Source: Oikopleura dioica
Taxonomy: Eukaryota > Animalia > Chordata
Assembly (NCBI GenBank): GCA_907165135.1
Contig: OU015566.1
Coordinates: 13,082,001 to 13,146,000, forward strand
DNA: 64,000 bases
Reading direction: 5' to 3'
Shown: positions 19,801-25,707 of the stretch, piece after piece
How the letters are laid out: every line of letters begins with the position of its first letter
Position numbering within the stretch: position 1 is the stretch's first letter
Program-made: the position numbers and the translations under genes
The notes under the pieces: generated by a model
The model's input: only the letters and a program-made list of their open reading frames with translations
The model's database searches: none
Told to the model about the DNA's origin: nothing

Positions 19801-20877
19801 GTACAGCATGTGCTTACTCAAGTTTATATAAATATAACATAACAAATTCCAATTTCGTATATGAAAAATTACTGTTGGCAACAGTCTGTTGCTACTAGCT
19901 GCGGTAATTGAACTCATACGCTCAAATGAGCGATTTCTTTTATTCTTGAAGTATCTTCGGATTTTCAGTTATTTAGGGTGTATCCTAAGATCACAAGCAA
20001 AATTCAGTAAGGAACTGACCCGCTGAAGACATCTATGGAGTATTTTCTTTCAGTCAAATGAATCCGAAGGGGCATTTTGTGCCCGGATCAGCCAGTATTT
20101 GACAGTAAAGAGGGGCGATAACGAAAAATCCGACTGATGAAAGATCGGGAATATTTATGGTTTCAAAGGCTAAAATAATTAAGGGTGTGTATCCGAGATT
20201 CACAAAGCAGCCCTCAACAAAGAAAAAACGAGAGCAACTGAACATTCGCGGAGCATTTTTATAGGTTTCCGTTCGACCCACCCGACAGGACTGAGGACCT
20301 GTAACATGGTTTAATACGGACCACGGGCCGTTTCCGGACCGAAATCGGCGCGGACGTTTCTAGGGTCCTATTGGCTTATGGTTTTTAATGGAGGCTGATT
20401 AGAGTAAGCTTATGAATAGAATGGAAAGGCTGGTTAGTTACTTTTGCGTGTACAAAAAGGGGTTAATTTTTTAACCCCCTGAGCGTGTACAACAAAAATC
20501 GCGCCCCACGGTGCGTTTCACCTGATTTTCGTCGTCTAACGGATTTTTTCACTCTTTTAGGTGAATTTATCGCTTTTTCTATTTCAGATAAATTCGGTTA
20601 CAGATTTCATGGAAGCGAAAAACGCTAGAATCGTACCTGCGCTTGCCCCATCGCTGGGCGGGGCAACCAGCTGTTCTCGAACGAACATGCCATAGTTTGG
20701 TTCGCAAGTGAAATAAGTCGTTCCTTGGATAGAACCGTTGTTTTTGCCTTTTTGTTCATCAAGAATGATTCCAATCCAGACTCCTTTGGCGAATTCAGTC
20801 TCTCCCACGAAGGCGACGGTTCCGTTCCCGACGTCTTTCGACGGGATCGAAACTCTCTGGCCGACTTCAACTCCCAT
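13815..20877 (-). CDS. DCTN1: Dynactin subunit 1 (p150glued), multi-exon
   Basis: CAP-Gly (FVGETEFAKGVWIGIILDEQKGKNNGS), basic/Pro-rich linker, coiled coils (EMLTLDKEMAEE; QVDLALGSEEMVENLT; LQETIKKFR), LQMFLPHGF..GGDAD, LLKKEKEFE, and a last exon ending QFRSFSQLLQPAF*. Confidence 0.95.
19401..19861. repeat. Diverged ~155-165 bp direct repeat pair in DCTN1 intron 1
   Basis: catcgtaaagatgtt..acggaaagtgaatt...gcttactcaagtttatataaa..aacataacaaattccaatttcgtata occurs at 19401-19566 and at 19709-19861. Confidence 0.8.
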
Positions 20878-22056: not shown

Positions 22057-22380
22057 ATGTCCCCTTCAAATTAAAAAAAAATCACCATTTAGTATGCCAA
22101 AATTTGTTCCCTAAAATAATCCGTTAGAAATGCTCCTGTTCTCAATATCTTACAATCAGAATATCCCCTTAACAACTCTGCTGTTACTCTTCTATTGACT
22201 GTCCTTCTCTCTCATAAATTATGAATTATTCATATTATAAAATATATTTAAAAAATATTTCCTTAAAAACAAAAAAATAAAAAAAGGTATTACCTTGAAA
22301 AATTGATAAAAACTATATACTAAAGCCTATGTAGTTGGTAATTTTGACTTTATTTACAGTGCAGTAATCATGACAAAAAA

Positions 22381-25300
22381 TTACAAAAGGGCATCGAGAT
22401 TGAGATAGGTATTTGCGACAATCTCACTGGCCGAGGAAATTGTTCCTGAAGCCGAGTCACCTTCTGTATTTGTCGCAGTAATCGTCATCGGATATGTGTT
22501 CGTTGCGAAAAATGGATCGGCAGCTAAGAACCAAAAGGAAAAGCCAACACTGCCCTTTCCAAGAGGAAGGTCGAAAGAACTGCCGTTAGCGCTAGTCGCG
22601 GTTATCGAAGTAATTCCGAAACGGGAGTTAGTTGGTTGAAGCCCGAGCCACCACTGGCTGCTTCCGGTTTTCCATCGAAGCTGGGTCTTCGAATTCGGCC
22701 GGAAGGCGGGAGGACATTCGACGAATTCCCAGGAGCCGTCGAATCGGCTAGGCGACTCGTTGCCAGTGACAGAGTTCCAGACGGCGAGGTTAGAGTCGAC
22801 ATCACCAGAGTGGCACTCTGGGCACGAATCGGCGACCATAGCGATTGTATCCTAATTTGTTGATTACAGTGATTTTTCTTTCGGATTTACCTGTCCAGTT
22901 GAGCATACTCCAGGGAAAGTCGATTGCTCACACGAGCATTTGAGCTTGACGCACCGTCCACAAGCGAGACCGTCGTTGTATTCATGAGATTTGGGCAAAG
23001 CAACAAAGTTTGTGATTCCAAGATTTGAACTTGAGTCAAATGCGAATTCGCAATTTCCAGTGAAAGACGTCGTCTTATCGTATTGAGTGAAATCTCCAGT
23101 ATTGGCCAGCACATCGCAAGTTCCACCAGTTCCGCCGTTTCCTCCTTTTGTTGTTGTTGTCGTCGCTGGAGGAGCGGTTGGTGGTGCTGTCGTGGATGGA
23201 CTTCCGATGTAAGCGGCGATAAGTCCTTGAAATCCGCAGTTGTAATCCAGCGCGACCTCGTTTGTGACGTAGTCGCTTCGGTCGTTTACGAAGTTGTCCG
23301 TTGCAGTTCGTGGACCACCGATCAAGGCGCCATTCAGACGGAATCTGTTAGCACCGCTAACATTTTTATCCGACCAGTCGCAGGCTCCCTCGCTAGCAGG
23401 TCGGCAAGAACTGGCTCGATGGTGAGGCTGATTGGCGAACTTGTCTCCATGGCCGACCATATAAGAAGCCTGCTGGCCGTTAATAAGTGGATGTCCGCTT
23501 GGCCCATCGCCGAGAAGATAGTCAAGTTGTCCCTTTGCAAAGCTCTCTCCATCAGCAACTCCAGCGTCCGTCGCTAATTTTGCAATAAAGGCGGCATTAG
23601 CTGCATGTCGAGCGCTTCCCCACTCTTGAATGAAGACCATTCCTCCTGGGGACTTCGATTTTGCTTTGAGATTGTTGACAAATCCAGCGATCTTCGACTG
23701 GTAAGCACTTTTCTGAGAGTCGCCAGCGGCATTGAGAATTTCATACATGAGAAGATTCGCTGCTGGAGTCTTGTTGTCCCAAGAATACTCTCCTCCCCAG
23801 CCGAGATCATTAGCGCTCGCCAAACTTTTTGCTCTAGCGACGTCACTTGTAAACTTGATTGGCTCAACTTCTCTCGATGCCTTTGCGATCCAAGCACCAG
23901 CGAGAACCAGTTCGTCTTTATAGCCAGACCAGGATGTGTAGAAATTGCCAAGGTCGAGACTGTCGGAGTATTTAGCCCGATGGTTGTCGGCAAAATCGAG
24001 CAGCTCTCGAGCTCTTCTGAGTAGATCGGTCGCTTCGGCTGGATTGGAGTCTTTGTAGAGCAGTGAAGCGGAGGCGAAAAAGGCTGCAGTTTGTCCAGCG
24101 AGATCGGAACCAGGCTTACTCGCATCGATTTTTACGGCTGGTCGGTCCATTGACATCTGCTCCGGGCGAATCCAAACGGAATGATCTGCATTGCCATCGC
24201 CAACTTGAGCCCAAAGCTCGTTAGGTCCGGTATGACAACGCTTGAAGAAATCGACACCCCAGTCAATAATCCTCTTCGAGTTATTGAACTCCCCAGCAGC
24301 TTTATAATTATCCTCGTATTGAACCATGCCCCAAGCTAAAGTGTTGAGAGCGAAAGCGGCTGGAAAATTGAATTTGACGTGATCTCCAGCGTCGTAGAAA
24401 CCGCCAGTTAGATCAACTCCGACTTCGCAACCATCGTGGAGGGCTGAGTCCCCGCGCCAAGGGATTCGTGACCAGGACGGTTTCTCTCCGGACATTTGAG
24501 CTTCGTAAAAGAGGATGCTCTTCTTGAGAGCAGACTCGTAATCGAGCCAGGAGTCGGATTGGATGTTGACGCTGGAAGGACTGGATGCTTCAACACCTTC
24601 GGGTCCGGAACAGTGATCAGTTGGGGGTTCAGTCGGAGGCTCAGTTGGCGGCTCAGTTGGTGGCTCAGTTGGTGGTTCGGTCGGTGGCTCAGTTGGTGGC
24701 TCCGTCGGTGGCTCAGTTGGTGGGTCCGTCGGCGGCTCAGTCGGTGGTTCAGTTGGTGGTTCAGTTGGTGGCTCGGTTGGTGGCTCTGTCGGTGGCTCGG
24801 TTGGTGGTTCAGTTGGTGGTTCAGTTGGTGGCTCTGTAGGGGGTTCTGGAGAGCAAGTTTCATGCGCTAGATGTGCATTCTTCTTGTATCTCCAGCCATT
24901 CTTGTCGCACGCAATCTGGAATCGAACTCTTTTGCTTTTGTCGTTACAAACAGCTTTGCATCCTTTGATTATGGTGCCTCTTTTCTGACAGTTCCATTTT
25001 CCGTCTCCGATCGGGTAATTGGTCATGGCATCCCATTCGTTGCACTGGAACTGGTTGCATGTCTCCTGCCAGTTCTTGCCCAGCTGCTTGGAGCTAATGC
25101 ATGGTTATTAGCGTGAACGCGATAATTGGAAAGTGGTTTACCTGAAGCTTCCATTTTTCCTGTTGCAGAGAACAAGCCCTGCGCTGGTTCCAGATCCTTC
25201 GCACCACAAATTGTACTTCTTCTTTTTGCTGTCTTGTGAATTGAAAGCTAGGTGACCCTTGGTGATTGAAAGCGTTGCAAGCTTTTCATCGCACTTGTCG

Positions 25301-25707
25301 ACTGGGACGGCGCATTTCATGTTATCAGTAACGTTTTTCTTTTTTATTCTAGTTGGGTTTCTACATTGACCCTAGAAAGATGTGAAAAAAATGAATTTCC
25401 GCTTTTTTCTTACCTGGATAGAGGCCTTTTTCCAATTTCCTTCTGCGTTTGGATCATAGCATTTCGGGTAGCACCTGATTGTAGGCTCATCTTGGTCGAG
25501 AAGCGGACAGTTCCAGTAGCCGTTCTCAATTGGATGGTTGCCTGTTTGTTCTCTCAAATCATCCGAGCAGGGATTACCCGCTCGAGCACTTCTGAAGAGC
25601 GATTCTGACGCAGAAAGCTCAGTTTCTTCCAACTTTTTGAGCTTTTCGAACTTGTGTTTCCAAGCTGCTTCTGAGGCGCTGAGCATCACCAAACTTGAGA
25701 GCTTCAT
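22381..25707 (-). CDS. Secreted modular glycoside hydrolase family 9 endoglucanase: signal peptide, three Cys-rich modules, (PTEP)n linker, GH9 domain, Thr/Pro linker, expansin-like domain (DPBB + CBM63-like)
   Basis: GH9 motifs: ALKKSILFYEAQMSG, WRGDS, DLTGGFYDAGDHVKFNFP, QVGDGNADH, YKDEL, PHHR, GALIGGP, NEVALDYN. Expansin-like motifs: ACGRCVKL, VADSCPECHSGDVD, WEFVEC, GSSQWWLGLQ. Three short GT-AG introns restore the frame. Confidence 0.93.
24618..24845 (-). repeat. Coding 12-bp tandem repeat, about 19 x PTEP (mucin-like linker)
   Basis: Visible in the 720-aa ORF; synonymous variation among the units is consistent with selection on the protein. Confidence 0.9.

Follow-up and report, generated by a model that had tools for sequence, protein, structure and literature searches.

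Can a cellulase and an expansin sit on one polypeptide in an animal that makes its own cellulose, and if they do, what would such a protein be for? The question arises in the larvacean Oikopleura dioica, in 64,000 nucleotides (nt) of contig OU015566.1 (GenBank assembly GCA_907165135.1, positions 13,082,001 to 13,146,000 of the forward strand). We refer to this whole stretch as the window and give all coordinates as positions in it. An earlier note, made from the letters of the window, had described a spliced gene on the minus strand, from 25707 to 22381, in which a cellulase of glycoside hydrolase family 9 (GH9) runs into an expansin module. To our knowledge, no animals other than tunicates use cellulose as a building material. 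We find that this is a real, selectively maintained gene of a larvacean of the Oikopleura dioica complex, and that it is the ortholog of the gene listed as GH9-4 (GSOIDG00008134001, protein CBY24130.1). We have hardly any doubt about the gene and its architecture, a secreted protein with the order signal peptide, Cys-rich modules, linker, GH9, linker, expansin. Taken as a whole, the locus is probably best explained as encoding a secreted multidomain GH9-expansin that works on cellulose, most likely the animal's own.

When we tested splice combinations, a model with four exons gave one open frame of 1065 codons with a single terminal TAA, and the features that the earlier note had listed are all present where it had placed them. 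In the list of open reading frames (ORFs), the gene shows up as a large ORF (22864..25026, 720 amino acids) and a downstream ORF (22381..22839). The 39-nt GT-AG intron that the note had placed inside the expansin is exact, running from 22890 to 22852, and because it contains in-frame stops it must be removed. For intron 2, the acceptor at 25094 is the only one that preserves the reading frame. A single exon holds the GH9 domain, the second linker and the first half of expansin domain 1, which makes the fusion independent of splicing.

The same structure is found in other lineages. On a metagenome contig (L001) there is an ortholog, 1028 amino acids long, that has the same architecture and the three introns in the same places (42, 43 and 40 nt). 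The last of them must be spliced to hold the frame, because 40 nt is not a multiple of three. GenBank entry CBY24130.1 has the same module order and the same junction between the two expansin exons, STGQ/DTIAM, where the slash marks the junction. Between our gene and the L001 ortholog, the proportions of nonsynonymous and synonymous differences (pN/pS) are 0.107/0.756 in the GH9 domain and 0.160/0.744 in expansin exon 4; synonymous sites are saturated while replacement sites are constrained, and the introns and the 3' untranslated region have diverged freely. The ratio of nonsynonymous to synonymous substitution rates (dN/dS) for the whole expansin module is about 0.11. All parts of the gene are under purifying selection. 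The reading as a genuine intron-bearing animal gene, in which GH9 is fused to a complete two-domain expansin of the EXLX type, is supported.

The GH9 domain was recognized by Pfam, and its best solved relative is a termite endoglucanase (1ks8, E 1.4e-113), with which the DAGD, HHR and NEV..DYN motifs all align. In the protein these are DAGD at amino acids 409-412 (DNA positions 24393-24382), PHHR at 731-734 and NEVALDYN at 786-793, with its Glu codon at 23259-23257. We predict a catalytically intact animal-type endo-beta-1,4-glucanase, as the earlier note had; nothing hints at an inactive enzyme. The domain is placed among animal GH9 sequences, and in the tree our gene and its ortholog fall within a fully supported (100/100) clade of six members, together with O. 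dioica GH9-3 and marine sequences. As the tree reads, this clade is a larvacean-specific expanded subfamily. Its closest paralogs apparently stop right after the GH9 domain, and the expansin module is absent from all 119 of the 119 other GH9 homologs, ascidians included. Many animal GH9 enzymes have a CBM2 domain, and Pfam found none in this protein.

For the expansin module we had several lines of evidence. A hidden Markov model (HMM) built without the gene or its ortholog scored 225 bits over amino acids 834-1065 of the spliced protein, and in relatives whose module is uninterrupted the last residues of exon 3 are followed directly by the first of exon 4 (CSTGQ/DTIAMV). Exon 4 alone matched solved expansins, with Streptomyces 9ms5 at the top (E 3.9e-7), then 7wvr, Clavibacter 4jcw and Bacillus subtilis YoaJ. 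A profile of the family matched both domains of 9ms5 (3.3e-20), 7wvr (4.8e-20, chain residues 4-194) and YoaJ (2.9e-16), and also the grass beta-expansin Phl p 1 (7.9e-5). The AlphaFold model of exon 4 had a predicted local distance difference test score (pLDDT) of 90.3, and the top matches that Foldseek returned for it were solely expansins and grass group-2/3 allergens. P0125, the closest relative that is complete, was modeled with a pLDDT of 93.9 and a predicted template modeling score (pTM) of 0.90, and its template modeling score to a solved expansin was 0.72/0.82. Structure models cover exon 4 and this relative; the N-terminal half of domain 1 in our gene is assigned by alignment, and searched alone against the PDB it had no match. 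From the profiles, alignments and models, we consider the module to be a complete two-domain EXLX-type expansin.

The residues that matter most in expansins can be located in the module, whose motifs are CGRC (amino acid 886), DSCPEC (917), GDVD (925) and GSSQWW (972). Wall loosening requires D82 in EXLX1 and D78 in Clavibacter. The equivalent residue here is Asp928 in GDVD, which is invariant in the 68 aligned modules and corresponds in the alignment to the position that carries the mutation in Clavibacter D78N (structure 4js7). The equivalent of EXLX1 D71 and the second Trp of GSSQWW are nearly invariant in the same alignment. Of the aromatic platform formed by W125, W126 and Y157 in EXLX1, the Trp-Trp pair is aligned and the third aromatic probably lies in the FSFWF of the alignment. 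Both the Asp and the Trp-Trp pair had been named in the earlier note, and both are there. We also considered a GH45-like hydrolase for domain 1, with the Asp after the TxY motif (TQYD) as a catalytic residue. The L001 ortholog and CBY24130.1 carry Ser in place of that Asp, so domain 1 has no conserved catalytic base, and we rejected this candidate.

Table 1. Features of the GH9-expansin gene in the window (all on the minus strand; positions are those of the window).
Feature	Position	Strand	Basis or remark
Whole coding region, ATG to TAA, 4 exons, 1065 amino acids	22381..25707	-	Colinear with the L001 ortholog and GenBank CBY24130.1
Exon 1: start codon, putative signal peptide (about amino acids 1-16, MKLSSLVMLSASEAAW), first Cys-rich stretch	25414..25707	-	
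Intron 1, 42 nt, GT-AG	25372..25413	-	42-nt intron at the same position in L001
Exon 2: second Cys-rich module	25142..25371	-	
Intron 2, 48 nt, GT-AG	25094..25141	-	43-nt intron at the same place in L001
Exon 3: third Cys-rich (Sushi-like) module, PTEP linker, GH9, second linker, N-terminal half of expansin domain 1	22891..25093	-	One uninterrupted ORF
First linker, (PTEP)n, 12-nt unit, 18.2 copies	24617..24834	-	Tandem Repeats Finder
GH9 catalytic domain	23221..24540	-	Pfam PF00759, E 1.4e-123, profile positions 1-443 of 444
Second linker, rich in Ser, Thr, Pro and Gly	23119..23220	-	Translation
Expansin domain 1 (DPBB), N-terminal half, with CGRC and the CSCEQ...C insertion	22891..23118	-	Alignment with uninterrupted relatives; HMM match from amino acid 834
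Intron 3, 39 nt, GT-AG, phase 0, inside expansin domain 1	22852..22890	-	40-nt intron at the same position in L001
Exon 4: C-terminal half of expansin domain 1 and expansin domain 2	22381..22851	-	
Expansin domain 1, C-terminal half (DSCPEC..GDVD)	22708..22851	-	Asp928 codon 22797-22795
Expansin domain 2 (CBM63-type beta-sandwich)	22384..22707	-	Trp-Trp pair, amino acids 976-977, at 22653-22648
AATAAA polyadenylation signal, about 27 nt past the stop codon	22349..22354	-	Read from the sequence; AATAAA at a similar distance in L001

How much of this was already known? The full fusion has been in the databases for some time, and the suggestion that such an architecture was new to chordates did not hold. 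CBY24130.1 (UniProt E4XD95_OIKDI, O. dioica, 1020 amino acids) has a complete expansin with the same junction; this protein model has been public since 2010 and is called only "unnamed protein product" or "cellulase". It is 75% identical to our protein overall, with 83% identity in the GH9 domain and 78% in the expansin. Together with CBY30769.1, which also has a complete expansin, it belongs to the 90% cluster of an ortholog fragment (P0001). A protein search with the linker of P0001 and the first half of its domain 1 had no match other than P0001.

The N-terminus of CBY24130.1 is that of "GH9-4" (GSOIDG00008134001) in table SI2 of a 2026 single-cell preprint (bioRxiv 10.64898/2026.03.31.715263). 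That preprint reports the GH9 expansion in O. dioica and gives GH9-4 simply as a GH9, with no expansin. It uses the name "gh9-expansin" for another gene, GSOIDG00010457001, finds that gene to be enriched among posterior Fol cells of the house-making epithelium, and proposes that it relaxes cellulose fibres there (bioRxiv 10.64898/2026.03.31.715263). A 2019 preprint had mentioned "an annotated expansin gene" in O. dioica and doubted that it was genuine; the expansin fusions given in its main text are to GH5, CBM1, CBM2 and CBM32 only. A literature search for the gene identifier had no match. The architecture itself is not new, then, as the CBY24130.1 model already holds it. What is new relative to the literature is that GH9-4 is a second GH9-expansin fusion of O. 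dioica, previously hidden by its annotation.

We searched 1.84 billion representative sequences with the module using HMMER and found 256 relatives. In both expansin trees the module lies within a strongly supported (100/99) clade of marine metagenome and metatranscriptome sequences, separate from a clade of oomycetes and from a clade with a protein of the hemichordate Ptychodera. Beyond the marine clade, the nearest named relatives are oomycetes, the amoebozoan Mastigamoeba and the hemichordate Ptychodera flava. An expansin of Lagenidium (P0133) scored 84 bits and the solved bacterial expansins are far more distant at 33 bits. The earlier note had supposed a horizontally acquired expansin, which is one possibility; the closest relatives are marine and eukaryote-like. 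The label "microbial-type" is valid for the fold and the family. The trees were built from rows other than bacterial, fungal and plant ones, and the Mastigamoeba sequence was left out; because of the missing bacterial, fungal and plant rows, no donor can be inferred from them.

One of these relatives is of interest in itself. The P. flava protein (P0139, XP_070533744.1) has 506 amino acids, is encoded on a 40-Mb scaffold and contains two expansin-like stretches, with E 1.3e-15 to exon 4. Its place in the trees is among unnamed sequences and outside the larvacean-type clade. Marine deuterostomes may have expansin modules more widely than the records show.

Within the marine clade, the module occurs with a variety of partners. 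It can stand with none, behind its own signal peptide (P0123), or be joined to CBM2 repeats (P0129), to CBM4_9 (P0132) or to other N-terminal regions (P0126 and P0128). Such varied partners among close relatives suggest extensive domain shuffling. Some individual cases are worth recording. P0129 (JGI 3300018840, contig L006) has two or three CBM2 domains beside the expansin module, and P0126 has a fragment resembling a Cu/Zn superoxide dismutase, below threshold. P0137, a close relative by score that was too incomplete for the trees, has an N-terminal region that by eye is like those of the GH9 proteins P0004 and P0009.

The relative with CBM4_9 is itself linked to a GH9. On contig L007 (Logan SRR7620404), positions 1-2200 encode the C-terminal part of a GH9, a CBM_4_9 domain, a Thr-rich linker and the expansin (P0132). 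Going by its architecture, this is probably the counterpart of the gh9-expansin of the 2026 preprint. Its expansin module is sister to the clade that holds our module, not to our module itself, and a common clade of the two GH9-linked modules was rejected in the expansin tree by the approximately unbiased (AU) test (p 0.006, for a group chosen after the first tree). The partial GH9 of L007 falls outside the GH9 subfamily of our gene, and here a common clade was not rejected (AU p 0.19). Two independent GH9-expansin fusions are likely, but not proven.

The part of the protein before the GH9 domain comprises the signal peptide, the Cys-rich modules and the first linker. The signal peptide was assigned by reading the sequence rather than with a predictor. 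The Cys-rich module of exon 2 had no Pfam or Atlas family match, and Pfam, searched up to E 1, gave no Sushi hit in the N-terminal Cys-rich region. In an Atlas feature search, the third Cys-rich module fell in Sushi clusters at 0.90-0.91 with low recognition, which is a weak Sushi-like lead. The first linker encodes 17 PTEP and 2 PTDP units, in agreement with the roughly nineteen that the earlier note had counted. In the L001 ortholog and in CBY24130.1 the same place holds a Thr/Ser-rich tract and not (PTEP)n, so the array is either replaced or fast-evolving in a linker whose flanking domains stayed conserved. The proline- and threonine-rich linker is probably O-glycosylated. CBY30769.1 (P0407) lacks the whole Thr-rich linker that CBY24130.1 (P0409) has, and is 974 amino acids long compared with 1020. 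This is either a difference between alleles or haplotypes, or an artefact of the gene model across the repeat.

We compared the protein with known systems. CBY24130.1 (GH9-4) is the ortholog from another lineage of the species complex. The O. dioica gh9-expansin and the L007 gene also have an animal GH9 followed by a C-terminal EXLX-type expansin, but they are separate from our gene and have another N-terminus, with CBM2-like and CBM4_9 modules instead of Cys-rich ones. The solved microbial EXLX proteins (B. subtilis EXLX1/YoaJ 2bh0/3d30, Clavibacter 4jcw, Streptomyces 9ms5 and Talaromyces 7wvr) have the same two-domain fold, with the conserved Asp in the first domain and the Trp-Trp pair in the second, although they are only 13-21% identical to the larvacean module. 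They also stand alone, whereas the larvacean module is tethered to GH9, and additional cysteines, in the CSCEQ..C insertion and in DSCPEC, set the larvacean clade apart. The cut-and-loosen principle, with an endoglucanase or a CBM joined to an expansin on one polypeptide, is also seen in the GH5-expansins of Xanthomonadaceae, in the GH5-CBM2-expansin CelA of Clavibacter and in the fungal swollenins (CBM1-expansin). The bacterial cellulase fusions use GH5 and not GH9, and they belong to plant-associated microbes acting on foreign cellulose, in contrast to an animal that makes cellulose. The main text of the 2019 survey mentions no GH9-expansin fusion. Oomycete EXLX proteins (Phytophthora, Pythium, Lagenidium) are the nearest named ones by score, have the DxCPxC..GDLDLS motif in common with the module and come from organisms with structural cellulose of their own, but they form a separate well-supported clade and do not have the CSCxQ insertion.

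We propose that the enzyme would work as follows. Domain 2 would dock the enzyme on cellulose microfibrils by its aromatic face (Trp976, Trp977 and an aromatic residue in FSFWF) and would stand in for the CBM2 of many other animal GH9 enzymes; we infer this role as a dock because the protein has no CBM2. Domain 1 would loosen the non-covalent contacts between chains without hydrolysis, by way of the invariant Asp928, and the tethered GH9 would then cut the chains that are exposed. The N-terminal Cys-rich modules may hold the enzyme in place within the matrix, and the linker, whose sequence differs from lineage to lineage, may space it. The most likely substrate would be the animal's own cellulose, either in the construction of the house or pre-house or in the trimming of nascent microfibrils in the house-secreting epithelium. 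We favor the house cellulose because the GH9 expansion is larvacean-specific and because the sister fusion is reported to be expressed in Fol cells. A role in remodelling the house, which the earlier note had put forward, is plausible, and we would give about an even chance to the enzyme acting on the animal's own cellulose.

Several results count against this explanation. The set of domains is equally compatible with a digestive role. The activity of the GH9 and the loosening by the expansin are predicted from the sequence. Pfam found GH9 only, with no match to DPBB_1, EXPB1_D1 or Expansin_C in the two pieces into which intron 3 splits the expansin. Even the complete module of the ortholog stays below the Pfam curated cut-offs (22.7 bits against 27 for EXPB1_D1 and 17.8 against 28.8 for DPBB_1). 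Over 22250-24450, a region clear of the PTEP repeat and with introns 1 and 2 outside it, only 0-5 partial reads of 90-95% identity came from the runs that bear the same species label (three of oligo-dT RNA-seq, one single-cell). The text of the 2026 preprint states no site of expression for GH9-4, and the house-proteome papers have no mention of a hydrolase or an expansin.

Some of these points can be put in context. The complete ortholog module has no Expansin_C match in Pfam either, and several relatives in the same expansin clade do pass the DPBB_1 cut-off. The sub-threshold scores reflect the limited sensitivity of the profiles and are not evidence against expansin homology; they probably also explain why GH9-4 was listed as a plain GH9. 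The check for DPBB and CBM63 profiles that had been proposed with the gene came out in two ways: the module was missed at the Pfam curated cut-offs and was found with the family profile, the HMM and the matches to solved expansins. As for the RNA, the runs are evidently from a different lineage that bears the same species label, and they neither support nor refute the splicing. No indexed sequencing run contains the gene stretch. The near-absence of RNA reads of at least 90% identity shows that there is wide DNA divergence under one species name (75% protein identity here).

If the domains alone cannot settle the substrate, other readings have to be weighed. The protein could be a digestive enzyme, secreted into the gut to break the cellulosic walls and thecae of ingested algae, with the expansin as an aid to binding and loosening. 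Its GH9 is of the ordinary animal type, the best solved match is a digestive endoglucanase of a termite, the GH9 cellulases of molluscs, crustaceans, termites and urchins offer a digestive likeness, and the 2019 preprint lists expansin annotations in algae-eating bivalves. However, the GH9 belongs to a larvacean-specific expanded subfamily (100/100), the other gh9-expansin of the species is reported in house-building Fol cells, and N-terminal Cys-rich, Sushi-like modules and linkers of the mucin type are seen more typically in matrix proteins. The animal also makes cellulose itself. We regard the digestive role as unlikely.

It could also be that the expansin serves for targeting only, as a CBM63 anchor that holds GH9 on cellulose with no loosening of its own, and that domain 1 is a structural remnant. 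Against this, domain 1 is conserved as well as domain 2, its D82 equivalent is invariant in the 68 modules and its D71 equivalent nearly so, and the low dN/dS applies to the whole module. This reading seems to us quite unlikely, even with the arguments that a GH9 without the usual CBM2 needs a binding module and that bacterial expansins such as EXLX1 have weak loosening activity. Finally, the expansin exon could lie outside the GH9 transcript, or the DNA could be a contaminant. There are no matching RNA reads for this lineage, and the 2019 preprint asked whether animal expansin annotations are contamination. But GH9 and the first half of the expansin share an ORF, the tiny GT-AG introns within the module are typical of the genome, three independent assemblies or lineages share the structure under strong purifying selection, and the 40-nt intron of L001 needs splicing. 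We believe that an artefact or a decaying gene is very improbable here, and a secreted GH9-expansin acting on cellulose is the explanation that we keep.

Directly downstream of the gene, between 16250 and 20900 on the minus strand, a CAP-Gly-like motif (20584-20877) and long coiled-coil segments are encoded by ORFs that look like a gene of the dynactin p150 or CLIP type. In L001, the contig of the ortholog, that spot is taken by a class-III aminotransferase, and so the lineages differ in local gene order.

The advance is incremental and not fundamental, as the protein model dates from 2010 in the public databases and the idea had been put forward for the sister gene. The literature had credited O. 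dioica with a single GH9-expansin, and GH9-4 adds a second one that standard domain annotation missed; surveys that rely on Pfam thresholds undercount expansins in animals. GH9-4, its Asp928 and its Trp-Trp platform are candidates for probing whether animals combine hydrolysis with a plant-like, non-hydrolytic loosening. We also have a tentative picture of how the module came about, which we find possible rather than probable. Larvaceans would have a family of expansin modules from one ancient acquisition or inheritance that was shuffled onto Sushi-like modules, CBM2, CBM4_9, mucin linkers and GH9, with GH9 fused twice independently, in the GH9-4 and the GH9-CBM4_9 lineages. If this is true, there would have been repeated selection for tethered "cut-and-loosen" enzymes that act on the animal's own cellulose, in parallel to the remodelling of plant walls.

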